From the sequence record PP968062.1: DNA of 64,000 nucleotides. The stretch is one strand, 5' to 3'. Shown here piece after piece: positions 15,644 through 25,834 of the stretch. The notes beneath the pieces were generated by a model. The model did no database searches, was not told where the DNA came from, and saw only the letters and a list, made by a program, of their open reading frames with translations. Made by a program: the position numbers and the translations under genes. Every line of letters starts with the position of its first letter. The stretch's first letter is position 1.

Positions 15644-15685
15644 TTTACTAGATTCTTGTGTAATACTATACGAGAATATTCAATG

Positions 15686-15845
15686 ACTCTGCATGTTCTC
15701 CGGGTATATCCCATAATTGCTATTCTACTCCTCCCTTAAAAGGATAGCATTTAAAGGTTGCGATGACTAATCGTAATGCAGGGTGATTAATAGTGCCGAC
15801 TATAGCGAGGGTCGGGTCTACACTTAACTGGTGGATTCCAGTACT
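15686..15845 (+). ncRNA. Candidate structured ncRNA D
   Basis: GTAATACTATACG motif upstream; CTGCAT/ATGCAG encloses three hairpins, followed by CCGAC/GTCGG and ACTGG/CCAGT. Confidence 0.45.
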
Positions 15846-15858
15846 CAATTCAAATTCA

Positions 15859-15887
15859 GCCGTTATAGCTCAGCAGGTAGAGCAACT
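15859..15887 (+). pseudogene. 5' fragment of a canonical tRNA-Thr(UGU)
   Basis: GCCGTTATAGCTCAGCAGGTAGAGCAACT = acceptor 5' strand, D arm and start of anticodon stem (thrU-like); stops 3 nt before the HNH start codon. Confidence 0.8.
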
Positions 15888-15890
15888 AAA

Positions 15891-16298
15891 ATGAGAATAG
15901 ATCTTGATTTTCCGTTTAACCAAGATTGGACTCATGGATATCTTAACAGTCAAACAACAGGTCGTCGGATTGTACATCTCCATGATGGTTCAGGCAAAAC
16001 GAAGACAGTTAGTTATGCAAGATATCTAGTCTCTGTGGAGCTAGAACGTCATCTTGAGAAAGATGAAGAAGTGGATCACGTTGACGATAATTTCGAAAAC
16101 GATAAACTACTTAATCTCCAAATTTTAACACCCCGGCAGAACAGAGCAAAGCAAGGTCCTCTAAATAGAGTAGACGTTGTACATGGTTCTTTAACAGCGT
16201 ACCGTTATTGTAAATGTGATATTTGCAAACTCGGTAAAAGTCTGTGGTCTAAGGGTGACAAAATTGGATACGAAAAAAATCTGGCCAACGTAGCATAG
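15891..16298 (+). CDS. HNH homing endonuclease
   Basis: SYARYL...EEVDHVDDNFENDKLLNLQILTPRQN HNH motif; C-terminal HG...Y..CKCDIC module. Confidence 0.9.
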   Translation: MRIDLDFPFNQDWTHGYLNSQTTGRRIVHLHDGSGKTKTVSYARYLVSVELERHLEKDEEVDHVDDNFENDKLLNLQILTPRQNRAKQGPLNRVDVVHGSLTAYRYCKCDICKLGKSLWSKGDKIGYEKNLANVA

Positions 16299-16370
16299 CG
16301 GTCGACTGCAATGGATTTGTAATCCATCGACTAACGTCCATCGTGAGTTCGAATCTCACCGTTGGCTCCA
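16284..16370 (+). tRNA. tRNA-Thr(UGU) with long variable arm
   Basis: GCCAACG/CGTTGGC acceptor, ATGGA-TTTGTAA-TCCAT, extended variable region, GTTCGAATC, U73-CCA. Confidence 0.88.
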
Positions 16371-22393: not shown

Positions 22394-23071
22394 TTACCTA
22401 TTTACGATTGGAACTGGTTGAGGTTTGTAGTTGACAGCTATCTTCCTTATCGCCTTACGAACGATCATCTGACGTACTCGATCACTCAGATTGATGTCGC
22501 GAGTGAGTACACCCGACTTAGCATTCCAATGATCGAAGCGACAACCCAGGATAGGGTAATGTGCTTGAGCCATTACCATGCATTCCAGTGGGTTGAATGC
22601 ATCACTAGCCGAAGTGAACACATTGTTCAGATGTTCTACCGCTTCACCACACCCGAAAATGATCGGCTTACGAGCAGGAGTGGAATAGTAGTTACTAAGG
22701 AACATGTCATGCGTCGATTGGAACACATGGAGAACATCGTCTTCATCAATGACAATGTATTCCGCATTGGGTGACAGTAGATGTTGGAAGTTCTTCGCCG
22801 TCTCGGCAATACTGTGGATATCATCACCGGTTTCCAAGAAGTTCAACCAGCAATGTCGATATTCGGTATCTCCCACCATAGTGAAGGCTTTTACTTTACG
22901 ACCCCAGACCTTTGCCTCCCAGTTACTCTCGGATGCAAGATAGATCTTGGAATGATCCAACTCAACGTAGTACGGTTTAGGTTTACCGTTCTCGTCCGTG
23001 ATATCGCTTTGGGTAATCGTAGTGACACGATCCACCAGCAAATCTTTACCATCCCAAACAACAAGCGTCAT
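22394..23071 (-). CDS. HslV/proteasome-beta-like Ntn hydrolase
   Basis: N-terminal Thr (MTLVVWDGKDLLVDR), SKI, MVGD, IFGCG at expected spacing. Confidence 0.6.
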   Translation of the reverse strand: MTLVVWDGKDLLVDRVTTITQSDITDENGKPKPYYVELDHSKIYLASESNWEAKVWGRKVKAFTMVGDTEYRHCWLNFLETGDDIHSIAETAKNFQHLLSPNAEYIVIDEDDVLHVFQSTHDMFLSNYYSTPARKPIIFGCGEAVEHLNNVFTSASDAFNPLECMVMAQAHYPILGCRFDHWNAKSGVLTRDINLSDRVRQMIVRKAIRKIAVNYKPQPVPIVNR

Positions 23072-23130
23072 ATTAAATTTTCCTGTTTTCAGTGCAAGAC
23101 GGAATAAAGCCCGCTCCTATTGGAGCGGGC

Positions 23131-23475
23131 TATTCGTTAGATCACCTCACTGGAAAGCCGGCCAGCTAGGTCGCCGAGGAGGTCAGCAACCAATCCAGTT
23201 AAGGTAACGCCACTCGGGGATACCCCTCTCAATCGGAGGTAGTAGCCGTCGTAACTTCAGATATAAAGACGGCCAAGTCAATATACCTGCTTCGGCTTGA
23301 TCCTTTGGCATGGATCGCTGTTAGTCTCTCCGAACTTATGCGGAGAGAGCCCACTTACACCGAAAGCTCGTGGGAATAAGGTGAGGTCACTGCGGCACCC
23401 TAATATGGCGACGGGGAGCCTTAGGGGAGATGATCCGGGTGACCTCTGTTCTGTTGGGACATTTGTCCTCGTATA
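23131..23475 (-). ncRNA. Candidate large structured ncRNA F (about 340 nt)
   Basis: Intergenic; promoter-like GTAATGATATACG at the 5' end, terminator 23105-23133; at least eight helices. Confidence 0.6.
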
Positions 23476-23497
23476 TCATTACATGCCAGGTATTCTT

Positions 23498-24028
23498 TTA
23501 CGTGAGCTTTACTTCCACGTTGACCGATTCGATTCCCAGGCTGTTACGTTTGGTCCGACCACGGGCCAGCAGATAACGAGACCAGGTTTCACCTTGGACA
23601 CGATCGAACTTGAAGAAAATGTGCTGAGTGATCATCTTGCTCAAATCAGCAATCTCTTTCGAGACCATATCGAAGAACAGGTTCTTGTCCATAACAGAAG
23701 CATCGTAATGCTTGAGCTGGACACGACAGTACTGGGAGTTTACCTCGTCGTAGAACTCGACCTCGGGTTCAGGTTCAAAATAATGGACCTTGTTACCCTT
23801 GAACTCGATACCATGAAGGATGACACCGATGTCGTCGTTATGGAAGAAGCGGTCTTTCACAGCACGGTTGTACTCAACAACCATTTTGTCCAGATGGATG
23901 CCACTTACCACTTCTTTGGTAGTGAAGAGGTAGCGACCATTGGGATCGACATACTGTTCACGTGCCCACAGGCAGCATAGACCGGTCGGAATGATTTCAG
24001 CGGGGATACGTAGATCACTGAGCTGCAT
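23498..24028 (-). CDS. Hypothetical protein
   Basis: AAGGA RBS before MQLSDL. Confidence 0.75.
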   Translation of the reverse strand: MQLSDLRIPAEIIPTGLCCLWAREQYVDPNGRYLFTTKEVVSGIHLDKMVVEYNRAVKDRFFHNDDIGVILHGIEFKGNKVHYFEPEPEVEFYDEVNSQYCRVQLKHYDASVMDKNLFFDMVSKEIADLSKMITQHIFFKFDRVQGETWSRYLLARGRTKRNSLGIESVNVEVKLT

Positions 24029-24482
24029 CGAGTTGTTCCTTCTTTGCATGAATGGATTTGGTGATGATGACGCGTCGTTCTTTTGCTGCATCGGACATTA
24101 TCGTTATTTGTTCTTGCATCTGGGTGAACAACAATAGTTCCAGCATGGTGATCAACATGTGCTCTATCCAGAGACGAACACATATTTTGTTCATGGGGGC
24201 ATCATAACGAAGCGGTTGAACCACTTTAGCCAGAGCTCCGGTAAGAGGGCAGGTGAAGCAGATGTGCAGGTTCTCACTGTCACTATCTTCAGCCCAATGA
24301 ACATCTTCCCCTTCTCCGTGAACCATGTTGGTTACATGAACCACGGGTTGATGCTCAAAGGCTTCCGGACGAGGTGTAACACCTTTCTCAACACACTGGT
24401 CAAGATAGATGTCACGAATTACAGCGGAGAGTTCTGCCGCTTCGAGAGACGGCATAAAAGGAAATTTGAGTGTTACCGACAT
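24015..24482 (-). CDS. Hypothetical protein
   Basis: AGGGA RBS before MSVTLK. Confidence 0.75.
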   Translation of the reverse strand: MSVTLKFPFMPSLEAAELSAVIRDIYLDQCVEKGVTPRPEAFEHQPVVHVTNMVHGEGEDVHWAEDSDSENLHICFTCPLTGALAKVVQPLRYDAPMNKICVRLWIEHMLITMLELLLFTQMQEQITIMSDAAKERRVIITKSIHAKKEQLDAAQ

Positions 24483-24710: not shown

Positions 24711-25133
24711 CTAAACGATAACCTCGCGCGGAGGTGGTTCAACTTTAGTCCAATCCAAGGTTAGAGGAGTAGCGATCTCTTCCCTCATTTTGAACTCGAC
24801 GATGGTTCGTGGCCCGAAATGTTTAATTCCGAGTACATACCCTTCGATAATGATTTCGTACTGCCGACACAACTTACGAATGTAAAGTTCTATCTCGGTT
24901 TCAGTTCGAGGATCCTCAGGAGCAGGGCGATGCTGATGATCCCAGAATATGCAGAACTCTAGCTTTTGCCAGTTACTGAATTCCGGGTTGTAAGAAAACT
25001 GATGCAGGTGAGCTTGTTCATACTCTTCCCCCACGTAAAACAGCAAACTATCGGTGGGTTCCCTAGTCAACTCACTGAAGTCGACTTTTCGCCCACCACG
25101 GGTGAGATCAACGACAATGAGTTGAGAAGACAT
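24711..25133 (-). CDS. Hypothetical protein
   Basis: Operon packing with 1-nt overlap. Confidence 0.75.
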   Translation of the reverse strand: MSSQLIVVDLTRGGRKVDFSELTREPTDSLLFYVGEEYEQAHLHQFSYNPEFSNWQKLEFCIFWDHQHRPAPEDPRTETEIELYIRKLCRQYEIIIEGYVLGIKHFGPRTIVEFKMREEIATPLTLDWTKVEPPPREVIV

Positions 25134-25834
25134 CAGGCGCTCCGTCTGTTATCGGTCAGAGAGCGAATCACTCGTCCGTCCACCTCGTTACGAGTTTTGT
25201 TACGGGTACGTTCAACCACACGAAAGACATTAACATGGTCAGCATCGACTTCATAGTTGGCGAACAGTTCACCGAAGTTGTTGGTCAGAGACTCAAGAAT
25301 CAGTTTCTTCGCATCTTCTTCGTTTATGTAGTGATACAGGATCACGCCACGATGATACAGGAACAGCGGGTAGTCCTGGCCGTTGATCTTAACTTCAGCG
25401 GCAAAGCCACCGTACGACATGGTGTCCGAGTTGATATCTTCACGGTACACATCCAGCTGCACATTGTTGATGGTGTGCATTTGAATCATGTCATTACCTC
25501 GACCACCAAAGAAGGTGGGACGCTTACGACCAGTAACCACATCTTGGATAGATTCCATCAGACGTGATACATCGGTGACGATCTCAATTACATCACACAA
25601 CTTGTTGATGGCTTCGAGGAAGCGAGCGTTCACTTCATCGATTTCGAAACGTGTCCACGGACGGGTTTCATGATTGAGGATGTTGATCCCGAACCATGCA
25701 TAACCGTTGTTATGTTTTACCTTAACGCACAGGTGAGGTACATCATCCAGGCCGGACTGATGGTTCAGCGTGTAATCACTGATGCGCTTCAGGACCAGTT
25801 GTACGAATGGGAGATTGATGATTTTGGTCGACAT
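25133..25834 (-). CDS. Hypothetical protein
   Basis: 233 aa, RBS. Confidence 0.78.
   Translation of the reverse strand: MSTKIINLPFVQLVLKRISDYTLNHQSGLDDVPHLCVKVKHNNGYAWFGINILNHETRPWTRFEIDEVNARFLEAINKLCDVIEIVTDVSRLMESIQDVVTGRKRPTFFGGRGNDMIQMHTINNVQLDVYREDINSDTMSYGGFAAEVKINGQDYPLFLYHRGVILYHYINEEDAKKLILESLTNNFGELFANYEVDADHVNVFRVVERTRNKTRNEVDGRVIRSLTDNRRSA

Follow-up and report, generated by a model that had tools for sequence, protein, structure and literature searches.

A structured non-coding RNA of phage HPP-Temi and its family in Pseudomonas chimalliviruses: a universal 5′ domain with an optional 3′ domain

Between two minus-strand open reading frames (ORFs), 23498-24091 and 22394-23071, the genome of Pseudomonas phage HPP-Temi, a phiKZ-like jumbo phage of the genus Pawinskivirus, contains a gap of 425 nucleotides (nt) without a conserved ORF. 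We studied this gap within a 64,000-nt stretch of DNA (hereafter the 64-kb window) that is identical to record PP968062.1 according to BLASTN and shares its coordinates. The minus-strand stretch 23469-23103 is a non-coding RNA gene of ~367 nt and the long form of a structured RNA family. A first-pass annotation of the window had placed here a discrete, heavily structured non-coding RNA of no known class, equipped with a promoter and a terminator of its own, a proposal supported by Rfam searches, by covariation among 22 homologs, by a strand bias in the base pairs and by transcript mapping in phage phiKZ. The sequence features that it described are present on the minus strand at the positions it gave; its boundary at 23131 had to be moved, as the predicted gene reaches 23103 and includes the terminator.

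The ends of the predicted RNA (23103-23469) were placed by reference to phiKZ: the 5′ end (~23469) by aligning the promoter with phiKZ P130, whose start is mapped at 263172, and the 3′ end (~23103) by analogy with phiKZ terminator T119, mapped at 263292. The promoter-like box, AAGAATAC-N8-TGTAATGATATA (23472-23497, minus strand), resembles P130, annotated as a ‘middle promoter’, and by homology would be of the middle type and used by the phage non-virion RNA polymerase. Its pattern occurs once in the 64-kb window, where zero matches are expected by chance, and it is no sigma-70 promoter. The box is kept upstream of the long forms examined, with a looser version upstream of the loci L143, L160 and L180. 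At the other end, a 10-bp G+C-rich hairpin followed by UUUAUU (23103-23131, minus strand) folds as an intrinsic terminator of the same type as T119, and its stem covaries among homologs (RNAalifold, pair counts); a simple terminator scan missed this hairpin (23131-23103) because its U run is interrupted. Within the promoter region, the 13-mer GTAATGATATACG had been read as a motif shared with the RNA genes of the tRNA region, which could not be established: the window holds one exact copy (23470-23482), and the sole near copy, with two mismatches at 15660-15672, lies within chance expectation (~1.5 such matches). The 13-mer falls inside a longer box, AATAC-N8-GTAATGATATA, which is unique in the window and kept upstream of homologs. 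The minus strand of the 425-nt stretch folds with a minimum free energy of -148.4 kcal/mol (z = -4.85), beating 100 of 100 dinucleotide shuffles, as compared with z = -3.24 for the opposite strand.

The RNA opens with a 5′-terminal hairpin, GGAC-AAAU-GUCC (23457-23468, minus strand, like all RNA features below), which shows compensatory changes in relatives: GGAA/UUCC in PhiPA3 and GGAG/CUCC in the 201phi2-1 clade. Next comes a 64-nt irregular hairpin (23383-23446), recognized by covariance model and covariation, that we call the universal 5′ domain. It is built of a basal stem P1 (23446-23439 with 23390-23383), a short P1b (23437-23435 with 23395-23393), an 8x2 internal loop between P1b and P2 with an invariant AUCUC opposite UG, a stem P2 (23426-23421 with 23403-23398) and a P3 hairpin (23420-23418 with 23409-23407) with the loop UNCCCGUC. 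A conserved single-stranded tail, ACCUUAUU (23375-23382), follows, for which the alignments give the family consensus RCCUA. Since MAFFT alone misaligned the stems, sequences were realigned with a covariance model, R1, built from four isolate sequences. The only match of R1 in the window is 23375-23449, with 95 bits, and phiKZ scores 94.9 bits with the same model. Folded singly, ten out of ten isolate sequences give the same architecture of P1, P1b, 8x2 internal loop, P2 and P3 hairpin.

Comparative data bear this fold out. Among 22 distinct sequences, 92.8% of the cells in the 5′ domain pairing are standard pairs, a value that falls to 34-52% when partners are slid by one to three columns, and 18 of the 20 pairs have changed on both sides. 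The covariation score is 0.608 versus 0.19 in shuffles, and none of 500 shuffles reached it; in a nine-sequence set, 96.4% of the cells are paired and 16 of the 20 pairs are altered on both sides. Freely covarying stems frame loops of fixed size, a pattern typical of sites that are specifically recognized; the invariant bases are AUCUC and UG in the internal loop, UNCCCGUC in the loop of the hairpin and RCCUA in the tail. Comparison of HPP-Temi with PA1C gives 100% identity for the 5′ domain and 96.9% for S1-S3 of the 3′ domain, described below, as against 74-76% for the flanking genes; we read this far higher identity of the RNA as purifying selection.

The family extends across the Pseudomonas chimalliviruses, which are phiKZ-like, nucleus-forming jumbo phages. 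BLASTN retrieves the whole element at ~90% identity from six further PA1C-like (Pawinskivirus-like) phages (seven records) and its first 150 nt at 78% from PhiPA3. Syntenic loci were compared by means of the gp287 homolog in phiKZ, Psa21, RVTF4, D6, 201phi2-1, Phabio and Viktualia, and the core ATCTCYC ... CCCGTC ... GRTGCY is present as a single copy in the syntenic locus of ten isolate lineages. Pattern scans and gp287-guided retrieval added 13 further non-identical loci from IMG/VR and metagenomes. In 23 non-identical Pseudomonas chimallivirus loci, R1 gives 23 matches, one per locus and at the syntenic site, and every locus with enough sequence holds one copy of the RNA. No member was found outside Pseudomonas-type chimallivirus contigs in IMG/VR and metagenome scans made by exact pattern only. 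A first pattern, CAAGCCGAAGC...GAAGTTACGACG, recovered only PhiPA3 from IMG/VR. The 5′ domain pattern recovered 110 stretches there, of which 77 new listed loci were screened and 30 stretches remained unscreened; among the 77, the real members are PA7 (phiKZ-like) and Phabio contigs only. In the metagenomes, 49 matches to the long-form pattern included two real ones, L143 and L160. More than 40 of the 49 (within L124-L172) were rejected as one fixed 114-116-nt chance match, and the 14 of these loci checked with Rfam are the antisense strand of archaeal 23S ribosomal RNA (rRNA). As this case shows, one accidental match can mimic a large family if it falls in a conserved gene with many copies.

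Members come in two sizes. In the short forms (phiKZ, Psa21, RVTF4, D6, Phabio and several uncultivated relatives), the terminator directly follows the 5′ domain. Eleven long forms (HPP-Temi, the PA1C group, PhiPA3, 201phi2-1, Viktualia and six uncultivated contigs) carry in addition a 3′ domain. The two forms are mixed among related phages, a distribution that suggests an ancestral long form with repeated loss of the 3′ domain. A third variant, L180:2370-2760 (IMGVR_UViG_3300042009_000063), shares the promoter box and the 5′ domain, after which come ~240 nt of unrelated sequence devoid of the long-form anchor motifs, with a G+C-rich hairpin at its end and no clear U run. In the long forms of the 201phi2-1 clade (L009:7085-7200, L011:7337-7440 and relatives), the 5′ hairpin is separated from the 5′ domain by an additional ~100 nt, which contain two more hairpins and a second CCUAUUC motif.

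The 3′ domain spans ~230 nt in HPP-Temi (23142-23374) and was modeled with RNAalifold on homologous long forms, in one run on nine of them and in a separate one on six members of the 201phi2-1 clade. Both sets agree on the long-range helix S1, on H6, S2 and S3, and on a three-way element made of S4, S6 and S7. In HPP-Temi, S1 pairs CUUUCGGU (23366-23359) with GCCGAAG (23296-23290); in the family (UUUCGGU with RCCGAAG) it is invariant save for one change from U-G to U-A. Hairpins Ha (23374-23350), H5 (23347-23326) and H6 (23316-23299) come before the 3′ strand of S1; H6 covaries and sits in the region enclosed by S1, and S2 (23289-23258), which also covaries, abuts S1. S3 (GUUAC/GUGGC, 23255-23251 with 23213-23209) shows, as GUUAY with RURGC, a compensatory change from C-G to U-A, and S4 (23207-23194 with 23154-23142) encloses S6 (23191-23169) and S7 (23167-23156), the latter inside the invariant CUGGCCRG. 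PA1C swaps CUGGA/UCCAG for CCAGA/UCUGG. Over the whole domain, 91.8% of the cells are paired versus 35-50% in slid controls, and both partners have changed in 21 of 42 pairs. The apical loops of H6 (GCCAA, 23309-23305) and S2 (UUGGC, 23276-23272) are complementary over at least four bases in all 11 long forms (NCCA with UGGN′), the variable pair being G-C in three sequences, A-U in seven and U-A in one. This covarying complementarity indicates a loop-loop (kissing) contact and, therefore, a compact fold. In the HPP-Temi clade CUUUCGG sits in the loop of Ha, which makes S1 formally a pseudoknot. The blocks CUUUCGG, RCCGAAGC, GAAGUUAY, GURGCG and CUGGCCRG are invariant and common to the 3′ domains. 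Counts of G-U against A-C pairs in the helices are 48 to 5 and 49 to 3; this excess of G-U assigns the structure to the minus-strand RNA, not to the DNA or the other strand.

The first-pass annotation had proposed twelve helices, and the comparative data retain nine of them: GGAC/GTCC, GAGGTCAC/GTGACCTC, CCCTAA/TTAGGG, GGC/GCC, CCCAC/GTGGG, CTCTCCG/CGGAGAG, GATCC/GGATC, CTGG/CCAG and the terminator. GCCGTC/GACGGC and CCGAG/CTCGG clash with the covarying S2 and S3 and were abandoned, and the long-range TCACCT/AGGTGA pairing is displaced by the local S4 helix (UUACCU.../...AGGUGA): a G-to-A change in PA1C preserves S4 and would break the long-range pairing. Thus, the initial observation was confirmed for its sequence features and most of its helices, and failed for these three and for the shared 13-mer.

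Known RNA classes do not account for the element. At gathering score, Rfam 15 identifies in the 64-kb window seven transfer RNAs (tRNAs) located elsewhere and gives no match in the RNA region, and even at E <= 10 the HPP-Temi region and its 201phi2-1 homolog return terminator look-alikes only. There is no Rfam 15 match to RNase P, transfer-messenger RNA (tmRNA), 6S, group I/II introns, riboswitches, T-box, prohead RNA (pRNA), ROOL, GOLLD, OLE, HEARO or small ribozymes. A suspected likeness to 5S rRNA, RNase P and the 3′ end of 16S rRNA was dropped for want of Rfam support, and comparison with Escherichia coli genomes and plasmids brought up no similarity. The element does resemble ROOL, GOLLD, OLE, raiA and HEARO in being several hundred nt long, phage-associated and without known function, and in combining covarying helices with tertiary contacts; unlike them, it belongs to a narrower family, found only in Pseudomonas chimalliviruses and without a match in Rfam 15, and it is smaller than ROOL and GOLLD.

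The GenBank record of HPP-Temi reads this region otherwise, as it annotates three coding sequences (CDSs), CDS0041 (23137-23232), CDS0042 (23229-23354) and CDS0043 (23405-23980), which overlap the RNA gene or lie antisense to the upstream gene. In a rival reading, the locus would hold no RNA gene and would instead encode these small proteins, or else matter at the level of the DNA, for example as an origin or packaging site, or as a remnant. CDS0041 and the plus-strand ORF 23297-23980, which contains CDS0043, are broken by stops or indels in PA1C, as is a 30-amino-acid (aa) ORF. The first-pass annotation had named translation of this plus-strand ORF and a lack of covarying homologs as findings that would refute its proposal; the broken ORF and the covarying homologs both speak in its favor. 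CDS0042 is intact in PA1C, an intactness that is uninformative because the DNA there is 97% identical between the two phages. No gene is annotated here in PA1C, and in PhiPA3 only 4 nt of the end of gene 354. In addition, the compensatory changes and the G-U/A-C asymmetry point to a minus-strand RNA, and the phiKZ homolog is transcribed with defined ends. The three CDS calls are probably spurious and a locus without an RNA gene is extremely improbable. A 13-codon ORF noticed at the 5′ end of the RNA does exist and is kept in PA1C; PhiPA3 has no AUG at the start position, and the phiKZ and Psa21 sequences have no counterpart.

The expression of the family can be approached through phiKZ, whose transcription units have been mapped. 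Promoter P130 (start 263172, ‘middle promoter’) and terminator T119 (263292) delimit there TU198, a gene-less transcription unit of 120 nt (Putzeys et al., bioRxiv 10.1101/2023.10.13.562163; Microlife 2024). Table S7 of the same work lists a ‘5′UTR-derived ncRNA candidate’ (that is, a non-coding RNA derived from a 5′ untranslated region) linked to PHIKZ289 and attributed to premature termination, without structure, family or function (10.1101/2023.10.13.562163). This candidate is exactly the phiKZ short form of the family. Both RNAs share a homologous 5′ domain (94.9 and 95 bits with the same model) with covarying stems, a similar promoter box, the same type of terminator and the same neighborhood, gp287 ... 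RNA ... gp289, all on one strand. They differ in that the phiKZ RNA consists of the 5′ domain plus terminator (120 nt), to which HPP-Temi adds the 5′ hairpin and the 3′ domain (~367 nt). The RNA had been called undescribed at first; this holds for its structure, family and function, which that work does not give, and has to be qualified for the 120-nt phiKZ short form, which figures in that supplementary table. We found no publication on gp289, nor on a structured RNA motif in these phages; a 2026 review on jumbo phages names the phiKZ non-coding RNAs in passing and without function, and the enhanced crosslinking and immunoprecipitation (eCLIP) study of ChmC analyzed annotated genes only.

By homology to phiKZ, the phage’s own RNA polymerase would transcribe the HPP-Temi RNA from the middle-type promoter, most transcripts would end at the terminator and accumulate as a discrete RNA, and read-through transcripts would carry the downstream gp289-like gene. 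The universal 5′ domain may then serve as a recognition module for a conserved partner, in all likelihood a protein from the gene-expression machinery of either phage or host, with which the RNA would form a stable ribonucleoprotein, or act as a decoy or a scaffold, rather than being a messenger RNA (mRNA) or a small-molecule switch. The 3′ domain would be an accessory fold that the phiKZ, Psa21 and Phabio lineages dispense with. We give this explanation as a whole, namely a non-coding RNA gene expressed by the phage polymerase and acting through a macromolecular partner, a probability of roughly 0.5. Its mechanistic part taken by itself, the action through a conserved partner as ribonucleoprotein, decoy or scaffold, is more tentative and stands somewhat below an even chance.

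Several points weigh against this explanation. For the 5′ domain, the pair counts were made on alignments fitted to the model, and the 3′ domain was tested on the very alignment that had yielded its structure, so that both lean towards structure; relatedness among the sequences, moreover, makes the shuffle controls look more significant than they are. Given the slid controls and the many independent compensatory changes, the fold of the 5′ domain is still convincing. All the evidence of expression comes from the phiKZ homolog, transcription in HPP-Temi being presumed by homology, and the phiKZ candidate was reported without northern validation (10.1101/2023.10.13.562163). The phiKZ RNA is also literally the 5′ leader of gp289, which fits a role in cis. 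Finally, the data agree equally well with the binding of a protein, an RNA or a ligand, and the partner is hypothetical.

The position of the RNA with respect to its downstream neighbor leads to the main rival explanation, in which the 5′ domain would be a cis-acting leader controlling transcription past the terminator into the gp289-like gene or genes, the discrete RNA being a by-product of termination. Control might be exerted by a put-like modification of the phage RNA polymerase (antitermination) or by binding of a protein or metabolite (attenuator or riboswitch). The source paper itself classes the phiKZ homolog as ‘5′UTR-derived’ and the result of premature termination, and the next promoter mapped in phiKZ lies at the end of gp289, with none between T119 and gp289 (10.1101/2023.10.13.562163), so that phiKZ gp289 appears to depend on read-through. 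In HPP-Temi, the downstream gene (22394-23071, minus strand) encodes a 225-aa homolog of phiKZ gp289 and PhiPA3 gp355 (22% identity, E 3e-4, and 35% identity, E 1e-34, respectively, by BLASTP); it starts 32 nt past the terminator and, as a consequence, it probably depends on read-through as well. A same-strand gene begins soon after the terminator in every locus examined, and in seven lineages a gp289-like gene comes next or follows after one small ORF; in L012 and Viktualia, the two loci of the 201phi2-1 clade in which one could be identified, it lies ~1.2 kb downstream. A partner as conserved as the phage polymerase would, moreover, explain the extreme conservation of the 5′ domain.

Other observations speak against a leader of this kind. 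The short forms of phiKZ and Psa21 show no mutually exclusive terminator/antiterminator pairing, as their terminator hairpin persists after removal of the 5′ strand of P1/P1b. In the long forms, the 5′ domain and the terminator are set apart by a separately folded domain of ~230 nt, and it is not evident what its tertiary fold would contribute to a leader. The gene immediately downstream varies with the clade (gp289-like, gp425-like or a small membrane-like ORF), and no gp289-like gene was found in the 201phi2-1 locus. Comparison with known leaders is likewise mixed. The put RNA of HK022 is also a structured element (~70 nt) with conserved internal loops, located after a promoter and before a terminator that downstream genes must pass, but it consists of two simple stem-loops acting on the host polymerase, and we found no sequence similarity. 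Riboswitch aptamers and T-box leaders share with the HPP-Temi RNA invariant loop or junction bases framed by covarying stems and followed by a terminator and, in the case of the T-box, a UGGN′/NCCA pairing with a covarying N. They differ in having a competing antiterminator, lacking in phiKZ and Psa21, and no Rfam riboswitch or T-box model matches; in our RNA, furthermore, the NCCA partner lies inside the same molecule and the downstream genes are neither metabolic nor aminoacyl-tRNA synthetases. The HPP-Temi RNA is thus like riboswitch aptamers, put, pRNA and T-box in single features only, and fails those of their defining tests that were run. On balance, we regard a purely cis-acting leader as possible, if rather unlikely.

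The base composition of the invariant positions evokes instead a small RNA (sRNA) acting by base pairing. Pyrimidines abound at the conserved unpaired positions, which are complementary to Shine-Dalgarno-like sequences, so the C/U-rich strands AUCUCCC, UNCCCGUC and RCCUA might pair with the purine-rich ribosome-binding regions of phage or host mRNAs, much as the UCCC-loop sRNAs of Staphylococcus do with their targets. An A-rich (ARN-like) stretch precedes P1 in most members and an intrinsic terminator with a U-rich tail ends the RNA, a combination that could recruit Hfq. Yet, within the 64-kb window, sequences complementary to the three motifs show no enrichment and no such site is convincingly placed at a start codon, and a plain seed would not need the conserved strict loop sizes and irregular helix geometry. 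We consider that such a function is quite improbable.

The 3′ domain opens still another perspective. Its ribozyme-like size, long-range helix, covarying loop-loop contact and invariant palindrome CUGGCCRG would suit a catalytic or self-assembling RNA: a ribozyme, an RNA whose NCCA and UGGN′ loops pair between molecules into an oligomeric ring or cage, like phi29 pRNA or the ROOL and GOLLD assemblies, or one whose UGGN′ loop captures the NCCA of tRNA 3′ ends in the manner of a T-box. The loops of the phi29 pRNA (AACC/GGUU) were also first read as an intramolecular contact. This phage RNA likewise has two loops with 4-5 complementary bases that covary between relatives and a modular layout with a dispensable 3′ part, a resemblance only, as we found no homology and no match to the Rfam pRNA model, and the loop-bearing domain is missing in many sister phages of HPP-Temi. 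For the latter reason, the 3′ domain cannot serve an essential shared process such as packaging. As Rfam gives no match with its ribozyme, pRNA, T-box, ROOL and GOLLD models and no catalytic core can be recognized, a catalytic or self-assembling function for the RNA seems very doubtful. In a broader and more speculative version, less doubtful though still distinctly unlikely, the long form would represent a new type of phage RNA with a compact tertiary fold, working as a machine and not as a regulator, be it oligomerizing (through the NCCA/UGGN′ loops and CUGGCCRG, like pRNA and ROOL), capturing tRNA 3′ ends or catalytic, and the 5′ domain would be the universal module by which it docks onto the apparatus of gene expression in nucleus-forming phages.

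Nucleus-forming jumbo phages, in which transcription is separated from translation, are a very active research subject. Our results define in them a covariation-supported RNA family outside Rfam 15, whose members share one universal module and in some cases add a 3′ domain with a tertiary contact, and tie it to an experimentally mapped phiKZ transcript. That this RNA is conserved far more than the surrounding genes implies an important partner in the machinery of phage or host. Natural short and long forms are available side by side in phiKZ, PhiPA3 and PA1C-like phages in PAO1. The comparison also corrects the three probably spurious CDS calls in the HPP-Temi record.

Concerning the neighboring genes, a gp287 homolog (25133-25834, minus strand) lies upstream of the RNA gene, as in phiKZ. 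The upstream gene 23498-24091 (minus strand) is predicted as a 197-aa ORF that is probably too long, given that in PA1C a stop interrupts the extension at its codon 10 and the annotated protein has 176 aa. In PhiPA3, the proteins encoded upstream of the RNA are unrelated and no homolog of this gene occurs at that position, so the RNA travels with its downstream neighbor and not with the upstream one. Across nine aligned homologs of the gp289-like family, 11 positions do not vary, among them an LE and an FD pair, and residue 2 is Thr in eight of them and Ser in one. The flanking proteins have no sequence match in Pfam, PHROG, NCBIfam or the PDB, and an AlphaFold model of the gp289-like protein made from three sequences (predicted local distance difference test, pLDDT, 46) was too poor for use; the N-terminus of this protein may resemble that of Ntn hydrolases. 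Away from this locus, the plus-strand region 15660-16300, after tRNA-Leu(tag), begins with a ~200-nt ORF-free stretch opening with GTAATACTATACG. A sequence resembling a tRNA 5′ half (~15861-15890, plus strand) runs there straight into an ORF (~15831/15892-16298, plus strand) that carries an HNH-like motif and ends just inside tRNA-Thr(tgt) (16284-16370); this arrangement looks like a homing endonuclease inserted in or beside a tRNA gene.

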